A stretch of DNA of 64,000 nt from Lytechinus pictus (lineage: Eukaryota): NCBI RefSeq assembly GCF_037042905.1, contig NC_087257.1, forward strand, positions 16,554,001 to 16,618,000, given 5' to 3'. Within the stretch, counting starts at the first letter, position 1, and each line of letters opens with the position of its first letter. The notes below the pieces were generated by a model. It had not been told where the DNA came from. It saw nothing but the letters and a program-made list of their open reading frames with translations, and did no database searches. The position numbers were made by a program, and so were the translations under genes. Positions 6,202 to 50,500 of this stretch are shown piece by piece.

Positions 6202-8786
6202 CAGGAATAGGGAATGAATTGGCATTGTGTGGAAAGGGTTTCTTACAAATGCTGCAGGGGCAACAAAAATGCCCAGTAGAGCATGTCTTGGGAGTGTAGA
6301 GTGTATGAGCTGACTTGATTCTTTGTTAACCCCCCCCCCCCCCCCCCGAGAGGGGGGGAGATTACCACTGGCATTGATCATGCTTCAAATAATTCCACTG
6401 CTGAAATTGACATTAGATAAACTGCTTTGCTTTTATGTTAATTTAATACAAAGTAAAAGTTGCAATGTAGCTGCGAGCATTCAGGATCAAAACCCTTGTC
6501 GCAAATTTAAACATGCCCTTGTGGGTTCAGCTATGGAGTTTGGGAAAGTAAGAAATTAATAGAGGGGTGGGGTAAAAGCAAGAAGAGATCTAAATCGGGG
6601 GGGGGGGGAGGGTGCGGACACTGCAGCTTGGAGAAGGAACAAGTTGAGAAGAGTAACAATTTCAGGGCAAAGTGCTATAAATTTAGACAGGGAAAGAGGA
6701 AAAATCAATAGTGCAGGGATGGGTAGAGATGTGGGAGAAAAAATGAAGGGGAATGCACATGGGCCAAAAATATTTCAGAAAGCAGTTATTTATCAGCTAG
6801 ACGGAAACCGCCACTTGTCAAAAATGTCAAGTCAACACAAGTGCGATGGGCTTCTCCACAAAATTTTTGCTTGTCAAATTTATTTTCGTCGAAATGACCT
6901 AAAATTTGGGGTGATAACCCTTTTTTTTTTGGGGGGGGGGGGGGGCTTGTCAAATTTTCCAGCCCCTTGTCCCCCTACCTTTTGGGAGAGATTTCCGCCC
7001 CTGCATGACAGTAATGCCCCTCACATTCACCAGTAATTAACTTCTTTCAAGTTGAAGCAATATGTGACCTTAATCCCAAATGAATTTTTTTACTATATAA
7101 TTACAATTTGACTCTATAATTACTCTTCATGTAATCCTTTTTATCGTTTCCTCAAATGTGTTAAAAATTAATGATAAATTGCAGAACAAGCTCTTTCTTA
7201 AATAGATTACTACCCAATTTTAGTATTATTTCTTGATTTAGACTTTCTTTGATGCAGACTGCTATGCAATGAATCTCAAAGCACTTCAGGCGAAACAGTT
7301 TTGCTAATCTCTTAGAACAGATCATGATCTGTTTGATTTGATATGCATTGCTGTGAGTGGTTCAAGTCCACTGGTGTTTCCCTTCTGGCATGCAGTTTTA
7401 CATCAAGTTCATCCCATAAAACTGTCCAATAATAACCCAAGCTTCATAAACACTGGCAAATCATTATATACAGTGTACAAGGATTTTGCACCTGCACATT
7501 TTCAAATAGAAAATTGGGTGTTTATCAGGAAGAAATTTGCATTGTAATATGGTCACTTGTCTCAATGCAAAATATGGCATATTGAAATTTATGACTATTC
7601 AGAAATGAAACTTGAAAAAATAAATTTTTGCAAAACTTTCAAATAAACACAGTACAATAATGAGTGAATTTCATATTTTAATTGAATTGAATGAAAATTG
7701 TTGTGATTTGCCGTCCTAAATTGAGTCAAGTGGATGTACATAGACTATCTTCCTAAATCACGTTTTTAAATCTTTTAAGATCGTGTATGATAACCTAGCA
7801 CTTGTCAAATTGGATGGAAACACTTTGGTACATCTATTTGAATAGAATTCTGTACCATCTCCTGACCCCCCCCCCAAAAAAAAAAAAAAAAAAAAATGAC
7901 ACAGGTTTCCAAGATTATGAAGCATGATCCAAGAGATTTAGCATCCCTGAAAATAAACCATTCTCCCATTGCTTCAATCTTGAATGTAAAGTATAAATTA
8001 TATGGGACTGAAAATAATTTACCTTTTTGTGATAATTGCACATTTGCACAATACAGTTCTTATATTCAAAGCGAAAACAGTGACAACTATTTAAACACTT
8101 GCCTTTCAGCAGGGTTTAATTGACAATTGGTGTTGTCCCAACAAGTCAACCTACACGTGACAGCCCTTGCCCTATTTATCAACTTTGACAAAGGTCCCCA
8201 CTGCCGACAAAGGATCACAATCCGCCGTGTCTTCTCGACTTTACAGGACACTTTGCAATTTCATGTTACCACTGCGGGGGTTTCTTCTTTCAACATATGG
8301 ATATCTTCTCACAGATTATGCATCATACCCTAACCTGGTACATACCATCAATGACTTACAAAACATGATACTTCATAAGTATACGATGTCGCAGAGCGTC
8401 TGGTCGGGCTATCAATGCCGTCTTGTTGATGACATAGTGGATCATAAACTCTCAGTATAATCTGCCAGATGGCCATTGACCATTATCCATTTTCCACTGG
8501 TCTGGTCGTCAATGGTCACTAAGGATCATGGTAGCGGTCCATACGAAGATTATGCAACATCACTGATCGGCTATGGTTTTGGCAGCCCTTCTCAATCGGT
8601 CATTGACGGCCACTAACCTCATGCACCATACTCACTGAGGATCAGGTTAATAACGGTCAACACAAAAATTACAGCAAAATCATTGACTTGCTTCAAATGG
8701 TGACGGTGGTAGCCGGACAGTCAATGGTGACCCCTGACCTCGCGTATCACTGAAATTGTACAGTCTACAGTGCCCTAATAGTCCAG

Positions 8787-25100: not shown

Positions 25101-27403
25101 AAGACATCTGCCAAGAATTCAAATTCCTAAGGAAGGCTTTGCCTCAGTGCACACATGGAAGGAGTTGACCATTCCTTCGCTATAAACTCCCATGACGGAC
25201 AAACATCATGGATTCTGGTGGGAAACTTCAGGAGTGAAGGAGGCAGATTACTTTTCATATGAGAAACCGATGAGCTGCTAAAGTACAGTGCCCAAAGAGG
25301 CAGCTGGATTTGAGTTAAAACCTTCAGATTATTTTATTGCATTTCTTCCTAATAAATTGACATGAAAATCATGAAAAGAAACAAATTTTTTCTTGATTGT
25401 CTTCTTTCCTTAACTACTAAAGAGTACTTTTATTGTTCGAATTCGTGTAATTAGGGATCCATATGTCTAGACGAGGAATCATGGCCCTGCATGGGAAGCG
25501 GGGGTGCTGCGTGTAGTATTCACCATAGGCACACCCCTGCATGGAAATTTGGTACGTAGATATGCTAAAAAGCATAAATTTAATCAAAATCGCCTTGTCA
25601 ATTTTTTTCCTGGACCAAAATCCTGTACAATTTGTATCGAAACTTTTTTTTCTTTCTTTTTGCTTGTCAAATTTGGACCAGCACCCCCTGCTCATTCATC
25701 GTTCCCAGGACCCTGCAAAGAATATAACAAAGCTATGATTTTATTTATACACCGACGAGAATTTAAATCCTTTTAATGGAATTCAGTGAGAGAGAGAGTC
25801 AGACAGGTGAAAAAGATGGTAACATCAGGCTTCCACTTTGTATATTTCATTTGCTCGTAAAAGCTTTTTGAAGAGTGTTTTGCAAAAGGGAAAGGAAATT
25901 ACACCAAATGGTATCGCCTCCTGGCGACACAGCTTCTACAAAAACGCTATAATTAGAGGAGCAATTAGACCAAGGAGATCTCCTTGATTAGACTGTGCTC
26001 TCAAAAATATACATATTAGAGTAGAAGATTCTGTGTTTATTCCCGGGGTTTATTCGGTATTTGAATACTTACACTAACGTTTCCTGTCTTGATCATGTTG
26101 ATCGAGGCGAATATTATCACCGTCATCGTCGTCATCATCATAGTAAGTACATGTTTTCTGACACTTTATTGCTTCAACTAAGTAATATCAGTAGCGTACA
26201 CAGAGGGGGTGGGGGGTTACACGGGTTCAACCCCCCCCCCCTTTGATTTTAGTGAAAGGCAACCCCCATCAATAAATCAAAACCCCTCTTTAATAAAATA
26301 ATGTTGGAGAATTTTTTTTTTTGCTTTTCAACTTTTCAGTCAGTTTGACCCCCCCCCCCTTCAGAAATCCTGCGTACGCTACTGTGTGATATAATTTTCG
26401 GACTGCGGAAGAATCCTTATGAGTTATGTGATATGAGTTTTGTTTGTGATATTCTATCGTTTTATGAATTAGCTGTTTCATAATCATAAAAGGAATTCTC
26501 TGAACGTCACTGTTTCTGCCCTACTTGGTTTTCATGTTCCCTCTCTACATATTATATGACCCCTTCTCCCCTCTCTCTCCCCCTCTCTCAATTCGCACCC
26601 TCCCCTCTATCTCTCCCCCTCTCTCTCTTCATCTTTTTCAATATTTCTTTAGTAGAGGGGAGATATAAATTATGTTACAGCACTTTCACACATCATCTTC
26701 CCTCATCCCAGTGACATTTTTATGCTCTCTATTTTACGATGTTGAATCATTCTGCATGATACATTTTATTTTCCAGTTCCCTCCATCCCCTTTCATTATT
26801 TTAATCTCNNNNNNNNNNNNNNNNNNNNNNNNNNNNNNNNNNNNNNNNNNNNNNNNNNNNNNNNNNNNNNNNNNNNNNNNNNNNNNNNNNNNNNNNNNNN
26901 NNNNNNNNNNNNNNNNNNNNNNNNNNNNNNNNNNNNNNNNNNNNNNNNNNNNNNNNNNNNNNNNNNNNNNNNNNNNNNNNNNNNNNNNNNNNNNNNNNNN
27001 NNNNNNNNNNNNNNNNNTTTGTACCCCATCTCTCCCTTTTTATTAAAAAAAAAAAAATTAAAAAAACACAATCAAACACAGTGACAGTTTTCGTCTATCC
27101 AGCATTGTTCAAAATGTATAATGTTATTCCAAACACACACTCAGTGTTAGTTTAAATATGCATATTATTACATCCTGAATTATGAAGAATCACTTTTCCC
27201 TACTTGGCATATAATAATAAACTGAATACTATGTCTACGGGCCTACTGCAAGTTCTGTCAAATAATTCGTAACCTTTACCATGTTTACGGCATATATAAC
27301 TTGCATGGGCCTATTTGAAATATGATTATGTTTTATACGCCAGTAATCAGCGTTGGTCTTGTAGGCCTATTCATTCCGGTGTTCACAGTGTCCAGTTCGG
27401 TGT

Positions 27404-29439
27404 TTAGATGGCGCCTCCGTCACCAGCACCTGCATACAAACGGAATCAGGATATACATTAAACAACACTGCAAAAAACACAACCGTCCGGTGCTAATTTA
27501 ACACAAGCCCAGTATCTCCATGTACAGTATGTACCAGAAAAGTGTTGGGACAACCCCAGTTTGGATTTGGGGTTAACACTAGACAGGCGTCAAATATTAC
27601 TTCCTTCTTTTGTTATAAACACTGCTAATGATACAATCCTTGCAGCTGATTTTCTAAGAAAAGAACACACCCTAAGAGGTACATAAATGAAAGCTTAATG
27701 AAAATCATACAAACATTAAGAGAGTATAAACGTTTTGATCACTATGTACATGATATACAAGCAAATTAAAAAAATATCGAAATGTCACTGTACATGAACA
27801 ACCTGTATATTAGATTAGCAGATACCCCGATGGGCCTGTATAATAATAATAATAATAATTATTATTATGAGGCGCCGATTTATCTAGTTGCCTATTCAAT
27901 TGCGCACTATATACCCGGCTGTAGCTCCAGCTGCTTATGGCGCTTGGTGCATTCAAGGAATTAATCCTACCGGGTACCCATTCACCTCACCTGGGTCGAG
28001 TGCAGCACAGTGTGGATAAATTTATCGCTGAAGGAAAACACGCCATGGCTAGGATTCGGGCTAGGATTCGAACCCACGACCCTCCGTTTGAAAGGCGAGA
28101 GTCAGAACCACTAGACCACAGCGCGCCCGACAGACTACAGATTATTTTGAAAATGTCATCAATATAATAAATGAAGTGGCAGTTTATGTTCCGTTTTGAT
28201 CAAGTTGAAAGCAAAAAGACAAACGTCATACTAACATACATGCGACTAAAAATAATTTGTTCATCTGCATTATGGAGAAAGTTTACAATACTAGGCTAGT
28301 ATTTTTTTAGAATTACAATATTAAGAGGCCGCCATATTTCATGTTACGAATTGGGGGGGGGGGGGAGAGCTTAACACGCGTCGAAAACAACAAAATATGT
28401 ACGTCACAGTACATACCTTTTTGTTGATTTTATGGACGTGATTGACAATATCCTCTTAAATAGCTTAATCAGGCCTGAGTTGAATTTAAGAACCTTCAGA
28501 GTTTATTTCCATCATATTTATATTTTGAAGCGTTTAATATGCAAATGAAAACAACTCTATAACTAGCTAAATTGTTTAGATTTTTTTTAAGCGTAAGTCA
28601 AATAAAAAAATTATACAAAATATGTATAGAAAAACGCTCTAAGCTTTAAATCGAGGGGGACGATGCCCCCATAATTTTTTTTTTGTAATGAAAATAGCAA
28701 TGATAATAATTAATTTACCGGCACAAAAGACGACCCTGTTTTTCCTCCGTGTACACCAGCAGCCAGGGGCATTGGCACAGGCTAGAGAACAGAGAAAACA
28801 TTGAAATACAGATAGATGAAACACAGATAGGTAATAAGGGCCATGGGCCCATTCAAAATGTCACAAGTGAGATGAGGGCAATTTTCGGGGGGGGGGGGCG
28901 TCTGACTTGAATCATGCAAATTCCGACTCCAAATTCAACTTCAACTATTATTCTGAAGGCATGTTATGTTCTATCGCGGACACTACATTAGAAATGTATG
29001 TCCGTAATACAACACAAATGGATTGAAACTTTCATGATCACATTAAGGATACCTTGTGCACGCTTTTATTATAGTTCAAAAAATGCAATAAATGGACAAT
29101 GTCCATAACTCATAACACCCCAGGGCCACGGACCCCCCCCCCCCCAACACAAAAAAAACATGTATATACATTTTATATATATATATACATATATATATAT
29201 AGGCGAAAAAATGACAAGACGATTTGACGTTGCTGTAGACCACAATTTAATCCGAGCTTTCGGCCTTAGGCCTTCTTCATGGGTTCTTTTAACAAAAACG
29301 AACGAAACATATCAATAGTATAGAGGGAGGAACAGGTGGAAATATGGGCATTTACATGTACATATATAATAATTGATATATAACATATTTGGTACAAGAC
29401 ACAGTAGTCATGTTAAAGAGTGGATGCCTGTTTACATTT

Positions 29440-29494
<55 letters not shown>

Positions 29495-29804
29495 TAATTG
29501 CTCTGACTTAAAATGAAGGAAATACATTCTAACATCAATGTGCAGGCAGTAAACCTCCATCCTTTACATGGTCTACAAACATCACAATTACTTTTTTTTA
29601 TAATGCACTTGATCACGTTCACGACGTACCTTTGTATTTCTTCATATTCCTCCCCCTTTTCTCCGCCAACAGAAGGTCCTGTGTGAATGGGTCTCTCTTC
29701 ATGAATTCGACATCAGCGGCGAGATCGTCCTCGGCATCGTCGAAATCGAAAGCCAGGGCAACGGCGAGCAATGCAGCAAAGACGATAAGTGCCTTGGTAG
29801 ACAT
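27404..29804 (-). CDS. Secreted prepropeptide, 87 aa (signal, acidic pro-region, KR sites, cationic 4-Cys mature peptide), antimicrobial peptide/toxin-like; coding exons 29804-29630, 28781-28719, 27429-27404
   Basis: Phase-1 GT-AG junctions give MSTKALIVFAALLAVALA-FDFDDAEDDLAADVEFM-KR-DPFTQDLLLAE-KR-GRNMKKYKACANAPGCWCTRRKNRVVFCAGAGDGGAI*; probable 5' UTR exon ending 30613 and an upstream TATA box. Confidence 0.8.
27840..28127 (-). mobile_element. tRNA-derived SINE
   Basis: Minus strand A box TGGTCTAGTGG, B box GGTTCGAATCC, SINE body, (ATT)n tail. Confidence 0.85.
29203..29440 (-). mobile_element. Penelope-like solo pLTR/retrozyme remnant between (TA)n tracts
   Basis: Flanked by (TA)n on both sides; contains a minimal hammerhead motif at 29283-29251. 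Confidence 0.55.
29251..29283 (-). ncRNA. Minimal (Penelope-type) hammerhead ribozyme motif
   Basis: CCC-ATGAAGA-A-GGCC-TAA-GGCC-GAAA-GC-TC-GGA; core differs from CUGANGA at C3. Confidence 0.55.
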
Positions 29805-30735
29805 GGTGTCAGTGTCGTTGACCTTTTCTGTGTTGATTATTTTGATTCATAGATAAAATTCAAAGGAAAAGTAAGCGAATAATGATCATTTTGTTTAAAA
29901 AAATTATGTCACCTTTTATCATACAAGCTATGTACTCAAGTTTGAAGAGATGCCTTGTCAGAGGGCTACTTTATAAAAAGAAAGTGTATGCGCGGCAAAA
30001 TCTACAAGAAGCTTATGGGATTTTTTAAATCGGAATTCTAATAATTTTGAATAGAATGTAGTCATTTTTAATTGATATGCCCCATGTACAATGCTGTATA
30101 TATTTTTTCGAGAGTACAACCTGTTCTGTAGGAGTGAAATACATCAAAGCACTTCTAATAGTTGGTAAAAATAATTAATGACCCATGATGGACTATAACA
30201 GGTAGGCCTATACCAGAATGAGGTATCCTATATAGTGTCAATCATAAACACTGATATTGTACCAGTCGGGCCAAAAGAATGTACGTACTGTAGATAAGGG
30301 TTCGCCGTGGCATTTGCTGCGGCGACAATTTTACGCTGTAAATTCAACACACTAATGGAATGACCAACTTTAACCCTTGGTTTAACACTATACCCTATCC
30401 TAAACCTGACATAAAACCCTATTACAACCCTAACCCTATATTTTAGACGAAATAACTCCCGGAGCAAATGTGGTGTCACCCTGGATAAGATGAAACCAAA
30501 GCATGTATAACAAAAAAGCTATTAAATCCAAAACATTGTTCTCTATATGCACAGATGAGTAATATCATACGACAACAGCAACATCATTTGCGATCACAAA
30601 AGAAATTCTTACCAAAATAACTTGACAGGAAGCAAAAACGGAATCTTCGATAGCCCTCCCAGGACGATGAATACAAGCTACCGTAAGAATCTTAAAAAGA
30701 TTGAGCAGTTCTGAAGAAACCTCCAAGATACTCGA

Positions 30736-30743
30736 TTTATATA
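30736..30743 (-). promoter_or_regulatory. TATA box of the prepropeptide gene
   Basis: TATATAAA on minus strand ~25-30 bp upstream of an Inr-like TCAGA and a 5' UTR exon with a GTAAG donor at 30612; ETS-like ACCGGAAG (~30913) and AP-1 TGACTCA (31017) further upstream. Confidence 0.6.
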
Positions 30744-31129
30744 GTTTTTTGGGGACGTAAATCGAATGTTAATATTTATTTATCCTTCACGGTAATTGGG
30801 CTGGAGCGAAGCGCGTAGGACAAAGAATCACAAAGTAGAATTTCGTGTTAATTAAGCCTCATTGTGTTAATTAGCTAGGATCTGCCATTGTGCTTTAGTG
30901 ATCATGCTCACCACCGGAAGAATGATTTGCGTCGGTTTTAATGCGAGGCTGTCATTCTCAGTGAAAATTTGACCTTTCTAAAACATACGAAGTATACGAT
31001 GAAATGTAGATTAAGCTGACTCAATAAAGTATCATATTTACTCATTGGGACATGACCGTGTCTCCAAGAAATTCTGTTTTTGAAGCATTTTGTCCTGCGC
31101 AGGGAGTTCATTTTTTCTTGCCTGTTTGC

Positions 31130-32700
31130 GTCCCCCCTCCCCCTCTCCATCTTTTCTTTCTTTTCTCCTTCCCACGCCCTCCTTTCCCTCCCTCACTCTG
31201 TCCATCTTTCTTCCTTTTCTCTTTCCCCCCTCTCCCTCACTCTGTCCATCTTTCTTCCTTTTCTCTTCCCCCCTCTCCCTCACTCTGTCCATCTTTCTTC
31301 CTTTTCTCTTTCCCCTCTCTCCCTCCCTCACTCTGTCCATCTGTCTTCCTTTTCTCTTTCCCCTCTCTCCCTCCCTCACTCTGTCCATCTTTCTTCCTTT
31401 TCTCTTTCCCCTCTCTCCCTCCCTCACTCTGTCCATCTTTCTTCCTTTTCTCTTTCCCCTCTCTCCCTCCATCACTCTGTCCATCTTTCTTCCTTTTCTC
31501 TTCCCCTCTCTCCCTCCCTCACTCTGTCCATCTTTCTTCCTTTTCTCTTCCCCTCTCTCACTCCCCCACTCTGTCCATCTTTCTTCCTTTTCTCTCCCCC
31601 TGCCTCACTCTGTCCATGTTTCTTCCTTTTCTCTTTCCCCCTCTCTCCCTCACTCTATCTATCCATCTTTCTTCCTTTTCTCTTTCCCCTCTCTCCCTCC
31701 CTCACTCTATCCATCTTTCTTTCAGTTCCCTCACCTCCTCTCTCACTCTGTCCATCTTTCTTCCTTTTCTCTTCCCCTCTCTCCCTCCCTCACTCTGTCC
31801 ATCTTTCTTCCTTTTCTCTTCCCCTCTCTCACTCCCCCACTCTGTCCATCTTTCTTCCTTTTCTCTCCCCCTGCCTCACTCTGTCCATGTTTCTTCCTTT
31901 TCTCTTTCCCCCTCTCTCCCTCACTCTATCTATCCATCTTTCTTCATTTTCCATTTCCCCCCCCCTCTCTCTCTCTCCCTCCCTCCCTCCCTCCCTCCCT
32001 CCCTCCCTCCCTCCCTCCCTCCCTCCCTCCCTCCCTCCCTCCCTCCCTCCCTCCCTCACTCTATCCATCTTTCTTCCTTTTCCGTCACCCCTCTCTCCCT
32101 CCCTCATTCTATCCATCTTTCTTCATTTTCTCTTTCCCCCTCTCTTCCTCACTCTATCCATCATTCTTTCTGTTCTCTCCACCCCTCCCTCACTCTGTCT
32201 ATCTTTCTTCCTTTTCTCTTCCCCTGCCTCACTCTATCCATCTCTCTTCCTTTCCCTCACCCCCTACCTCCCTTACTCTATCCATCTTCCTTCATTTTCT
32301 CTTTCCCAATCTCTCCCTCTCTCTACCCATCTTTCTTCCTTTTCTTTTCCCCCCTCTCTCCCTCCCTCACTCTATATCCATCTTTCTTCCTTTTCTCTCT
32401 CCCTCCCTCACTCTATCCATATTTCTTCCTTTTCTCTCCCCTCCCTCACTCTGTCCATATTTCTTCCTTTTCTCTTTCCCCCTCTCTCCCTCACTCTGTC
32501 CATATTTCTTCCTTTTCTCTTTCCCCCTCTCTCCCTCACTCTATCCATCTTTCTTCCTTTTCTCTCCCCTCCCTCACTTTCTCCATCTTTCTTCCTTTTC
32601 TCTTCCCCTCTCTCCCTCCCTCACTCTATCCATCTTTCTTCATTTTCTCTTTCCCCACTCTCCCTCCCTTCCTCACTCTGTCCCTCTCTCTCCCCCTCCC
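31130..32700. repeat. Polypyrimidine/polypurine minisatellite (~40-bp unit CCCTCACTCTGTCCATCTTTCTTCCTTTTCTCTTTCCCCTCTCT) with (CCCT)n core
   Basis: Direct inspection; accounts for the 550-aa low-complexity ORFs. Confidence 0.95.
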
Positions 32701-35833: not shown

Positions 35834-38800
35834 TTACGATAAAGACAATTGACTCAAATACACAGCCGCTGATAGTGCAGTGGTGAGCCACGCCCAACAA
35901 TTAGTGTTGCTATAGTATCGGGACACGCCCATCGATTCCATGGTATTATAGGCCACCTCTCTACCAGTGTATTTGTTGCAGAAGTTGTCCCGACAGCACG
36001 CTTTGCAGTTGCCCGAATGGGCGAGTTCACGGCAAGTAGATTCCTCGGTACAGTCGAACTGCCGTGTGCAGTCACGCTTGGTGTAGACATGGACTCCAGC
36101 CGCCATCATAACTTCCGTCTGAAAAGGAAAAAAATAAGAAGAAATATTATGGAAGCTTAAAAGTGCCACCCATATGTTCATAATCATAATCATCTCGTCG
36201 TGTCTACATCTCTTAGGGAAAAGGATAAGATGAAGAGATCTCAGATCTCGTCATGTCTATATCCCGTGTGAGAGATGATCAGATGACAAGATCTTGGATC
36301 TCGTCATACCTACATCTTATAGAAGAGATGATCAGATGGCAAAATCTCGGATCTCGTCATGTCTACATTCTGTGGGAGAGATGATCATTTTCCCTAAGAG
36401 ATGTAGACATGACGAGATGATTATATGAACATCTGGGTGGCACTTTTAAGCTTCCATAGAAATATCATATTATAAGCAATGATCATTCCAATAAGGTAAG
36501 GTAAAAGCCTCCTGCTATTCTGTCAAATAATAATTTAAAAGAATAAACACAATGTTCTTTCACCTTGTTAGTTTACTTTTCCTCAAAGGGTCCTCAAATG
36601 GTCCTCAAATTGTGTGTTTTCAATGTTGTGTACTACTTTGTATTTTTGTTTCGAACAGAATATTTGCAGATTCCAATGATGTTCAAATAAATTCAGTTCA
36701 CTTCAATTCACAAATTTATTTGACAGCAGATAATGATGAAGAAGAAGACGACGAAGAGGAGGAAGAAGAAGAAGAAGGAGATGAAAAAGAAGGAGTAGAA
36801 GAAGAAGAAGAAAACAAAAGAAGAAGAAGGAGTGAAAATTAGACTACTTGGAAGTTTCACTAGATGTCAGGAAGCCCAGTAAATATTGAATGAAGTGACC
36901 CTATTGGACCAAATAGATTAATTCGGTTAACCCGTGATGATGTTAGACGATTTGACCATCACTTCTGCTCGTAGACAAACCCCTATAAAGGGGGTGGGGT
37001 GCATGTATATGAGTCTATAGGCCTAATAGAAAATTTACCAGGGATGCTTAATTGAATCGACCGTTTCCGTACCCCCCTCCCGCCACTAGCACCTATTTTA
37101 TAAGGTATATTTATCATGTGAAGGCAACCAATGATGAGGTTACAATGAATCAATGAATAACTGTAGGTATTCATGAAGTATTAACCCAGACGGGGACACA
37201 TCCCTGGCATTCATAATGCCAAAGCAACACGCACAGACCCAATGAATGATACGAACAACGCTATTGTTTCGAACTTTACATTCATCGATGTAGTGTATGT
37301 AGTCGGCTACCGTCGCGATGATGAGCGATGTGACTGGGGACTTATAATCATTAACCCCGCAGATGTCATCCATATTTTAGTAACCCGGTCGCCAAGACAG
37401 ATCCAGTGATACAATCCACGTGACATCGCAATGGACCGTGCATATTTCGGACGATAAATTTGTATCTCATGCGTTTTTAGTTTCGGGACACGCAGAAAAT
37501 ATCAGGTAAGGCTTTATTGAAGATCTTTAATTGGAAGAGTTTAGTGACATCTGTAACTGACATTGTTCAGTGGAATCTTTAATTGAAAAAGTTCAGTGAA
37601 ATATTTAATTGGAAGAGTTCAGTGATTTTTTTTATTATTGAAAGAGTTCAGTGCAAACTTTAATTGCAAGAGATCAGCGCAGTTCCGCAAATCTGTAATT
37701 GGAAGATTTCAGTGAAAGTCAATTTATTGTTAGATTTTAGTGAATCTTTAATTGGAAGAGTTTAGGGGTGAAAGCCACTGACGTACAGATGGGGGGGGGG
37801 GGGGCTTGGTGGCCATGGACTCCTCCCAAAGTTTTTATGACTAAGAAAATAAAACATGGGGAAAGGGGGAAAAGGGAAAAGGTGGATTGCAAATCTAATT
37901 GTGTTACAGATTTTGACAAAATGACCTAAAATTTTACAACTTTTCTGTTAAAATCTCGTCTTGATTTTCCAGGTGTTTCTCGATCGTGATTTTTTTTATG
38001 GGGGGGGGGGGGGGCAACAGCCCCAATGGCCCCATCTGTATGCCAATGGTGAATATTTGGGTCATAATATTTGAACTTACAAAGCAGTAGGTGTCACATT
38101 CAATGGCTACGAGGTCAATAGGTGAAAGGTCGCAGGTCGAGTTTGGGGATAACATGGACATACACCGGAAGCACTTGAAACAAGTTGAATAATCGAATAA
38201 ACCTGATAGAAGGAAAAAAAACACAGTAGAACGGTAATGCATTTTTAAATTTCATTATAGACATAAAACGATAATGAAAGCTGACTATCATAGCGACACA
38301 TTGGTAGCACCCAAGTCGGGGACATTGTGATGACCGTCGACCCCCATGAGAAGGGAAGAGAAATAGGGAACAAAAAGGGGGGGGAATCATTATTTTAAAT
38401 GCATATATCGTTCTCCCAGATGATGCACCACACTAAGGCCTACTTGAGCCCCCCCCCCCCCCCCATATAAGAACAATGGAAATAATCTTCGTGACGATAT
38501 CGCTTCTGGAATAGTTAATATTTCCGATAGTGATAACAGCAGAAGAAATAATTAATAAAAAATTCGAACTTACTTTGCTAGACATTGTGCAATCCTACAT
38601 TAAAAAAATGAAAATGCGATATACATTCTTCGTAACTATGACTTGTGTGTACTTGGATCCCCCCATTTTTTCTTATTAAGAAAACGAACATTCTGAGTTT
38701 TCAAATCTTTGGAAAAACGTGTTGCAACCATCATAAAATAGATTGGCTCTGTTTTGTTTTGTTATTGTTTGTTTTTTGTTTGTTTGGTTTTTTTGTATTA

Positions 38801-40052: not shown

Positions 40053-41969
40053 TTTCAAAATTGAAACTACATGTAGCAAAGAATTGAAATCAAAAGTTTT
40101 ATCCTTGGACAAGTCCAGCTATTTTTATTGCATGGAAGGTGCATAACGGGAAATGCAGACGACACAGCACGAGATGTTGCTATCGATAACAGTCTTCATG
40201 CGAGGGATGCTTTGGCGGGTTTATTGTTATCGCGGGCTCGGCTGGACATCATCTCGCGGCTCGTTCATTGGAAGTATATGTGATGACGTCGTGATCGAGT
40301 CTCGGGGGGATCGAGAGACACCTTACTTTCCAACATCGCCCGCCTGCCCGGTCCAGACCCGCACTACCTCCAGAAAAACAGCGACATCCGTGACAATCTA
40401 ATGAATAAACAATTCTAAGCGAACAGGCATAAGAATTGATGTGACGATTGCTTTCTCCAATATTGGAAGCCATTTTCAAGCTTGTCTGGATATCACATCG
40501 AGAAAATGAGTAGATACAACTTATTGGAAACTTTTTGTAACGCAAGGATTGATAATATTTAATATTGGCCTAATCAGACTGTAAAATAACTNNNNNNNNN
40601 NNNNNNNNNNNNNNNNNNNNNNNNNNNNNNNNNNNNNNNNNNNNNNNNNNNNNNNNNNNNNNNNNNNNNNNNNNNNNNNNNNNNNNNNNNNNNNNNNNNN
40701 NNNNNNNNNNNNNNNNNNNNNNNNNNNNNNNNNNNNNNNNNNNNNNNNNNNNNNNNNNNNNNNNNNNNNNNNNNNNNNNNNNNNNNNNNNNNNNNNNNNN
40801 NNNNNNNNNNNNNNNNNNNNNNNNNNNNNNNNNNNNNNNNNNNNNNNNNNNNNNNNNNNNNNNNNNNNNNNNNNNNNNNNNNNNNNNNNNNNNNNNNNNN
40901 NNNNNNNNNNNNNNNNNNNNNNNNNNNNNNNNNNNNNNNNNNNNNNNNNNNNNNNNNNNNNNNNNNNNNNNNNNNNNNNNNNNNNNNNNNNNNNNNNNNN
41001 NNNNNNNNNNNNNNNNNNNNNNNNNNNNNNNNNNNNNNNNNNNNNNNNNNNNNNNNNNNNNNNNNNNNNNNNNNNNNNNNNNNNNNNNNNNNNNNNNNNN
41101 NNNNNNNNNNNNNNNNNNNNNNNNNNNNNNNNNNNNNNNNNNNNNNNNNNNNNNNNNNNNNNNNNNNNNNNNNNNNNNNNNNNNNNNNNNNNNNNNNNNN
41201 NNNNNNNNNNNTACAACTGCTCCTACTAGTAACACATCTACTAATCCGTTACTACTGCTTCTTTGCTCTTACTAAAAGCAGCAGGAGGGGGATAAGGGGG
41301 TATCCGTAGCAAAATGATGGTGCATAATTAAAAAAAAAGATCTGTATTCTACCTTCAATGATAATAAGTTCGCACGGGCAACATAATCGTGATTAGTCTT
41401 CATTTATTTTTCATTTTAATGACATACCGACCCACAGTCGTTAAATCTAAATGAACAGACATGGAAAATACTGCATAGACTTTACTATCTGATATATATT
41501 GCATGTTCCATGTATAATTGATTGTATGGTGATGAAAGCGATGGGTATGAGAAATTCTATAGGGGGACGTTGAAGAAGGTTTGTCAGAAGGGGATGGGAG
41601 GGGGTAATCAAGCAGGGAGAAGGGAAAATGGGCGTGGACAAAAAATATTTTGTTACCATGGCTATGGCGCGGATGAAACACTTCTTGGGACTCTTTTTCA
41701 GTTATCGACTTTCGTGGGTGACCCCCCCCCCCCGCCACCACCGCCACCACCCCCTTCCACTGTTTCCCTTGCGACAAACCATGATAAGAAAGAGAATAAA
41801 TATATTGCATGGAAATTGGGAAAGTAAAAAAGGAGGCGATTATTAAGAGATGGGTTATCAATTAAAAATTATCCAAGTAATTTCAATATATCCATCAGCA
41901 TAATTATTTCTAAATTTAGTGCATTATGGAGTATTAAGGGAGAATTTGGAAGAGGCCAAAAAGAGGAAA

Positions 41970-50082: not shown

Positions 50083-50240
50083 GGGGAGTGTTTCAACAAC
50101 ATTTTTGTCCGACAAGTTATCAGATCTGACAACTTTCCTTGATTCTGATTGGCTGAGAAGCACTGTTACTATGGTAACTGTCTGATAAAACAGGATTTGT
50201 GGATAAAACATCTGACAAGTCCTTCATGAAACGCTCCCCT
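50083..50240. mobile_element. Harbinger-like MITE
   Basis: GGGGAGYGTTTCA...TGAAACGCTCCCC with CWG flanks. Confidence 0.65.
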
Positions 50241-50500
50241 GAAATGACTGAAAAGAAGGGAAGGGGAGAAGGGAGATACTTCAGTAGCTTAGTCTATATA
50301 TATATGATGGATTATGTACTTTTTTAAACCGAAAATAGAAACAAAATAGAAACAAAATAAAAACAAAATAAAAACAAACATTTCAATAGCGCTGAGCCTT
50401 ATTGCATGAGCTGTTTTGTTTTTACACTCTCGATGATATGAAGAAGTAATTCCAGTTTTTTCAAAATTGAATATTCATTCAATTATTCTACTAATAGATC

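Follow-up and report, generated by a model that had tools for sequence, protein, structure and literature searches.

LOC129274580 is a small gene of the sea urchin Lytechinus pictus with one putative non-coding and three coding exons. It lies on the minus strand of contig NC_087257.1 (assembly GCF_037042905.1), in the 64,000-nucleotide stretch between positions 16,554,001 and 16,618,000. This whole stretch is referred to below as the window, and coordinates are counted from its first letter. Judged by its sequence, the gene is best read as a member of the sea-urchin branch of a peptide family whose prototype is PpCrAMP, a cysteine-rich antimicrobial peptide (AMP) from the starfish Patiria pectinifera; both the gene and the prototype are already known. 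Homology between the sea-urchin family and PpCrAMP is probable, and because of this homology we infer, with modest confidence, that the sea-urchin peptide most likely serves as a secreted host-defence (antimicrobial) effector. In this way, more than 30 RefSeq proteins from four sea-urchin genera, all named 'uncharacterized', are now linked to PpCrAMP and obtain a working name and a testable role. The link also suggests that the scaffold is older than the split between starfish and sea urchins. In addition, the mature peptide is under unusually strong constraint, and this prompts one to ask whether the family members act as effectors, as signals or in both ways.

Gene structure and precursor architecture

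Joining three segments of the minus strand (29804-29630, 28781-28719 and 27429-27404) yields a 264-nt open reading frame (ORF) with an 87-aa product. This product is identical over its full length (100%) to the RefSeq proteins XP_063964739.1 and XP_054767344.1, which come from two annotation releases and are both named 'uncharacterized protein LOC129274580 [Lytechinus pictus]'. An earlier, sequence-only reading of the window had assembled the same three coding exons into an 87-aa precursor, and that model proved exact. The gene is not hidden, as this reading had supposed, because it is annotated in RefSeq and is invisible to the ORF track only. Furthermore, the gene region of the window is base-for-base the same as GCA_037042905.1 CM073238.1 at about 16.58 Mb, and a word-indexed protein search with exon 1 returned a single protein, the 87-aa product of LOC129274580.

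The exon at 29630-29827 opens with the final 23 nt of the 5' untranslated region (UTR; 29827-29805) and continues as coding exon 1 (29804-29630), which covers residues 1-58 and 1 further nt. It is 95% identical to its Lytechinus variegatus counterpart and is matched in tblastn by 44 family proteins. Coding exon 2 (28719-28781), also recovered by tblastn, carries the Cys core ACANAPGCWCTRRKNRVVFCA(G), and coding exon 3 (27404-27429) adds (G)AGDGGAI and the stop codon TAA at 27406-27404; its tail, G-A-G-x-G-G-A-I, is retained in Diadema. Both introns of the spliced model are phase 1 with GT-AG borders. Intron 1 (28782-29629) has the donor AAG/GTACGT and the acceptor ...TTCTCTAG/C, intron 2 (27430-28718) the donor CCG/GTAAAT and the acceptor ...TATGCAG/G, each acceptor following a pyrimidine-rich tract.

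The predicted precursor opens with a signal peptide (residues 1-18; 29751-29804) that has a hydrophobic core and A-L-A before the cut. It is followed by an anionic pro-region with 8 D/E in 17 residues (19-35; 29700-29750) and by KR36-37, the 11-aa spacer DPFTQDLLLAE and KR49-50 (29655-29699). The C-terminal 37-aa peptide contains 8 K/R and 1 D in the pattern C-x5-C-W-C-x9-C, with a net charge of +7, a calculated pI of 9.95 and a mass of about 3.9 kDa. The leader, acidic-residue, dibasic-site, spacer and four-cysteine counts of the sequence-only reading were all correct. A low-confidence AlphaFold2 model shows the prepro part as containing helices and puts a hairpin at 67-71/74-79.

Orthologues were found in L. 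variegatus (LOC121426903, with 4 conservative substitutions), Diadema antillarum and Diadema setosum, the latter two being 64% identical to the L. pictus protein. The three coding exons, intron positions, phases, GT-AG borders, both KR sites and the four cysteines are the same in all four species, with intron lengths between 493 and 1868 bp (493 bp for intron 2 of L. variegatus). The proposed junctions 29630/28781 and 28719/27429 are GT-AG, phase 1 and conserved in each species, and the position and phase of intron 1 are also shared by the Strongylocentrotus purpuratus model P0021. Nei-Gojobori estimates gave a nonsynonymous divergence (dN) of 0.020 and a synonymous divergence (dS) of 0.223 between the two Lytechinus species (ratio about 0.09), and 0.010 and 0.098 between the two Diadema species (ratio about 0.10). 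Because this exon structure is kept in four species under purifying selection, the gene stands far beyond chance.

Relationship to PpCrAMP

PpCrAMP was reported from P. pectinifera by Kim et al. (2018, Dev Comp Immunol 86:203; cited in PMC11767717) and is recorded as GenBank MF443207 and UniProt A0A223G1S1 (PMC11767717). Its 79-aa precursor consists of a signal peptide, an acidic pro-piece, KR and a 39-aa peptide that starts with G-R-K and follows the pattern C-x8-C-V-C-x10-C-G (PMC11767717, supplementary file 3). Coelomic epithelium was the source of the peptide, whose antibacterial activity is listed with minimum inhibitory concentrations of about 8-34 ug/mL. Reviews describe it as a predicted beta-hairpin and treat it as a lone starfish peptide, naming strongylocins and centrocins as the only cysteine-bearing sea-urchin AMPs; no sea-urchin relative of PpCrAMP is listed in the reviews of echinoderm AMPs consulted for comparison. 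The native starfish peptide is reportedly amidated, and its original description is said to mention orthologues in other echinoderms. The sequence-only reading had proposed an undescribed AMP or venom peptide family, a claim that has to be withdrawn because the prototype of the scaffold was published in 2018 (PMC11767717).

The two precursors resemble each other throughout. Both are small (79 vs 87 aa). In each, the signal peptide precedes an anionic pro-piece and KR with G-R-basic after it, and the cationic C-terminal peptide, 37-39 aa long, has the order C-loop-C-x-C-loop-C and a (K/R)R motif after C-x-C. Identity over the full length is 27-35%, and the predicted beta-hairpin of PpCrAMP has its counterpart at residues 67-79 of the low-confidence AlphaFold model. 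Precursor layout, the order of the four cysteines and beyond-chance similarity are shared, and the Cys-Gly at the precursor C-terminus of PpCrAMP is found in no sea-urchin member; in all of these, 7-10 further residues without a basic site come after C-x-G. The first loop has 5-9 residues in sea urchins vs 8 in PpCrAMP, and Trp, Tyr or Leu stands between Cys 2 and Cys 3 where the starfish peptide has Val.

Statistical comparison supports this relationship. A hidden Markov model (HMM) of the family aligned with the PpCrAMP precursor end-to-end at 16.2 bits, with KRG and the four cysteines in register. This score was reached by 11 of 5000 decoys in which the signal, pro and mature blocks had each been shuffled internally, and that of the mature part alone by 30 of 5000 shuffles. 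Alignment of the family with PpCrAMP in hhalign gave a probability of 95.8% and an E-value of 7.5e-9 over 63 columns. In BLASTP, the best member was S. purpuratus P0010 (LOC115921513; 35% identity, 80 columns, E 2e-8), and the window protein itself matched PpCrAMP with 34.6% identity over 81 columns (E 1e-5). The best fit to the shorter PpCrAMP pro-region comes from members without the first KR site and spacer (e.g. P0047 and P0049).

The sea-urchin family

An exhaustive profile search of 1.84 billion representatives yielded 18 matches, 16 of them real; the other two were rejected as spurious, P0016 being a repetitive protein of a protist and P0017 a tail fibre protein of a phage. Searching again with a 9-sequence profile produced a list of 32 proteins. 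Altogether, at least 30 related proteins are known from these searches, all named ones being an 'uncharacterized protein' of sea urchins. The family has at least 7 loci in L. pictus, at least 4 in L. variegatus, at least 4 in S. purpuratus and at least 12 proteins in D. setosum (90% clusters), and its copies are partly in tandem. No paper came up in full-text literature searches for the LOC and XP identifiers or for motifs of the family, and the S. purpuratus LOC identifiers of the family are absent from the supplements of a 2026 coelomocyte RNA-seq paper.

The family signature combines EKRG, K-x-K, C-x(5-9)-C-[WYL]-C-x9-C and C-x-G. Across the 27 full-length members, K49, R50, G51, K56, K58, the four cysteines, R70 and G80 are invariant; the second KR with its Gly occurs in 27/27, and the first KR site in most. 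The first loop of 5, 6-7 or 9 residues defines three subgroups, and the last loop always has 9. The net charge ranges from +3 to +8. Among the regions of the precursor, the signal and acidic parts are the least conserved, with pairwise identities of 0.49 and 0.39.

Two members, P0034 and P0040, are full-length spliced products with run-style accessions (ERR1712198_30751 and ERR1712142_56150) and the source label 'merc', which we take to denote marine plankton metatranscriptomes. Several unnamed short matches end in ...KYKG or ...KYKCEY and represent read-through of the phase-1 intron in unspliced DNA. The RefSeq models P0003, P0004, P0010 and P0031 take as their start an in-frame ATG located further upstream, in the 5' exon (e.g. 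L003 10001-10129); these starts look mis-called, because 20-50 non-conserved residues precede the signal peptide.

In D. antillarum, a second family gene with the same short AC..APGCWC loop lies in tandem about 9.5 kb downstream of the orthologue (L002 19571-19747 + 22135-22200), and no such tandem copy occurs in the L. pictus window. No second family copy was found in the 64 kb apart from one weak fragment at 50196-50279 on the plus strand. This fragment (...FMKRSPEMTEKKGRGEG...) resembles the KR-spacer-KRG part (45% identity, E 8e-4), is without a signal peptide, has stops just upstream and may be an exon 1 relic or a chance match.

Comparison with other peptide types

Strongylocins and centrocins, the AMPs of sea-urchin coelomocytes, share with the present family the general character of cationic, secreted echinoid peptides whose precursors carry a signal and a pro-sequence. 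Strongylocins, however, have a six-Cys motif, in contrast to the 4 Cys found here, and centrocins consist of two chains, of 30 and 12 residues, joined as heterodimers, whereas a single C-terminal 4-Cys peptide is present here. Neither was recovered in profile searches with the family. The sequence-only reading had set the scaffold apart from both types, rightly on the cysteine number and on the chain composition.

Among neuropeptide precursors, the MCH-type (ArMCHP/Spnp14) and somatostatin-type (ArSSP/Spnp19) ones are of similar size and place a disulfide peptide at the C-terminus after a dibasic site. Their peptides have two Cys and conserved residues of their own that are absent here, and in S. 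purpuratus the MCH and somatostatin genes are separate, named genes. Ambulacrarian MCH-type peptides are defined by a 10-residue ring and by two Cys, the first followed by M/I, the second with K/R penultimate to it; the present peptide, with its 4 Cys and 9-residue loop, has T following Cys 3 and V penultimate to Cys 4. CCHamide/GGNG-type peptides have one disulfide (two Cys), C-terminal amidation and a position directly after the signal peptide. The family instead has a C-terminal 4-Cys peptide and no Gly plus dibasic amidation signal. Eclosion-hormone-type and orexin-type peptides were set aside for their six Cys. The combination of C-x-C and a GAGN..AA..I tail also suggested an orexin-like reading, which was not kept, since orexin precursors have another layout and the PDB search returned no orexin chain.

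General searches pointed to no other known type. The only Pfam match, of the signal peptide to DUF5826, was sub-threshold, a PDB sequence search with the family profile returned nothing at E <= 10, and Foldseek of the AlphaFold2 model against the PDB produced only noise (E > 6). The quantitative PCR primers for Np8, Np9, Np10, Np13 and Np17 (Wood et al., 2018; PMC6209648) did not match three S. purpuratus family loci, the fewest mismatches of the ten 20-nt primers being 4-8 of 20.

Possible functions: host defence, signaling and others

On the host-defence reading, the signal peptide would direct the precursor into the secretory pathway and be removed after A18, while the anionic pro-piece would offset the charge of the cationic C-terminal part. 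Cleavage behind KR37 and KR50 by a subtilisin/kexin-type convertase would then set free the 11-aa spacer and the 37-aa peptide. The four Cys may be joined in two disulfides around a beta-hairpin that spans about residues 67-79, and by analogy with PpCrAMP the peptide may act as a secreted antimicrobial effector. The tandem and multi-copy expansion of the family, with its D. setosum complement as the largest example, is usual for effector families. The sequence-only reading had left host defence and venom side by side; the homology to PpCrAMP lends support to the former and none to the latter.

Several points weigh against a PpCrAMP-type host-defence effector, at the level of both homology and function. 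With the Cys held fixed, 191 of 5000 shuffles of the mature part reach the score against PpCrAMP, a weak similarity, and no starfish protein was recovered at E <= 0.001 in the exhaustive profile search. In most sea-urchin members a second KR site and a conserved 11-aa spacer are present, both of which PpCrAMP lacks. The sea-urchin peptides also have x9 instead of x10 in the last loop, and their C-terminus is C-x-G plus a 7-10-residue Gly/Ala-rich tail instead of C-G. The beta-hairpin comes from a structure model with a mean predicted local distance difference test (pLDDT) score of just 59.5, which is low confidence. Antibacterial activity and coelomic-epithelium expression are reported for PpCrAMP only, and for no sea-urchin member. 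Furthermore, the predicted mature peptide is the best-conserved part of the precursor (pairwise identity 0.58-0.67), and dN/dS is low across the whole precursor. Many antimicrobial and toxin families show the opposite, with a mature region that is hypervariable. Such a low dN/dS together with conservation of the mature part is what would be expected of a ligand constrained by receptor fit.

The most serious rival is therefore that the family consists of signaling peptides (neuropeptides, peptide hormones or cytokine-like factors), since the mature peptide is the most conserved part. The Cys peptide, and perhaps the spacer, would act through receptors, and the antimicrobial activity of the starfish relative would be a by-product of charge. 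This explanation is regarded as possible but clearly less probable than host defence. It is retained because of the low dN/dS, the stronger conservation of the mature part than of the pro-region, and the spacer and tail that PpCrAMP lacks. The ratio of 0.09-0.10 holds in the prepro part and the mature part alike, and the surroundings of the cleavage sites are, with the mature peptide, the best-conserved parts. Furin sites carry a P4 Arg, as is established from prohormone-convertase specificity; both KR sites are without it and resemble prohormone-convertase sites more than furin sites. In addition, the succession of signal, pro-piece, KR, short peptide, KR and C-terminal Cys peptide recalls MCH- and somatostatin-type precursors. 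One-to-one orthologues have been retained between Lytechinus and Diadema, whose split is old, and the proximal promoter is almost invariant. The neuropeptide caveat of the sequence-only reading was well placed. Against signaling, however, the family fits no known neuropeptide type (neither the MCH nor the CCHamide pattern) and has no Pfam match, and the primers of the unclassified S. purpuratus neuropeptide precursors mismatch the three family loci. Moreover, its sole characterised relative, PpCrAMP, was purified through its antibacterial activity, and tandem near-identical copies are unusual for neuropeptides.

A variant of this idea is that the echinoid branch in particular may be a receptor-mediated signaling system or a dual signaling/defence system. 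It is put forward tentatively, with slightly less weight than signaling for the family at large, because of the KR-flanked echinoid peptide, the C-x-G with its tail, the loop subfamilies and the constrained orthologues. If true, the signaling or dual reading would turn these genes into a family of sea-urchin peptide hormones that has so far gone unrecognised.

That the peptide serves as a venom or deterrent in pedicellariae or spines appears very unlikely. The product is a small, cationic, disulfide-rich secreted peptide, and the largest expansion was seen in Diadema, a genus with venomous spines. However, neither the PDB sequence search nor Foldseek returned a match to solved toxins, Pfam gave no match, the gene is under purifying selection with a conserved mature peptide, and the same architecture occurs in all sea urchins sampled. 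The spliced members P0034 and P0040, presumably of plankton origin, are not from adult venom tissue. Finally, a chance ORF combination or decaying copy, to which the return of the genome record alone in an exact-protein look-up might point, is scarcely credible in view of its presence in two RefSeq annotation releases, an ORF that has stayed intact in four species along with its splice sites and phases, a dS of 0.22 vs a dN of 0.02 and the conserved promoter.

Promoter region, introns and flanking sequence

A conserved proximal promoter block lies upstream of the gene on the minus strand (30716-30850). Its 135 bp (30850-30716) are 96-100% identical to L. variegatus, vs about 0.8 in the flanking non-coding DNA, and contain TATATAAA at 30743-30736. 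The TATA box noted in the sequence-only reading is thereby present in a conserved block, and the accompanying 5' UTR exon is plausible. This putative non-coding exon would span about 30715-30613 on the minus strand, with its transcription start and UTR junction predicted from the sequence: the donor TTG/GTAAGA is at 30613/30612 and the acceptor CAG/A at 29828/29827. The donor and the acceptor AG are both retained in L. variegatus, and a separate upstream exon also begins the S. purpuratus gene models of the family. Comparison by blastn between Lytechinus and Diadema or S. purpuratus revealed no conserved non-coding block. Further upstream, 0.4-2 kb from the promoter, a 48-bp minisatellite of about 33 copies (31177-32669) is C/T-rich on the plus strand; the same region includes a (TCCC)n run at 31956-32061. 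Long spurious S/L/P-rich ORFs appear in the ORF list because of this minisatellite, and L. variegatus has a collinear repeat array (L004 ~6770-8590).

Both introns contain repeats. In intron 1, (TA)n microsatellites occupy 29163-29201 and 29443-29494, with homopolymer G and C runs close by. Intron 2 holds a dispersed, SINE-like (short interspersed element) repeat with a tRNA-like 5' part at about 27970-28113; ARAGORN and Rfam called nothing in 27000-31200, this repeat included. The shorter intron 2 of L. variegatus has no aligned copy, and the repeat matches elsewhere in that locus (L004 1777-1911, 75%). Downstream of the gene, the first AATAAA, at 27039-27044 on the minus strand and 360 nt past the stop codon, is a possible polyadenylation signal by pattern match. 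Directly past it, about 390 nt downstream of the stop codon, lies a run of N (26809-27017, 209 bases); a second run covers 40592-41211 (620 bases).

Upstream synteny with Diadema is not kept, the neighbour there being CybS (SDHD-type) and in L. pictus a Ly6/CD59-like gene. The last exon of the latter lies at about 35834-36110 on the minus strand (L001 3696-3971). Its 150-aa product has a Cys pattern ending in ...CCRDNFCN and a hydrophobic tail, as in Ly6/uPAR- or CD59-like proteins, and gives a sub-threshold match to Pfam CD59 (E 0.0068).

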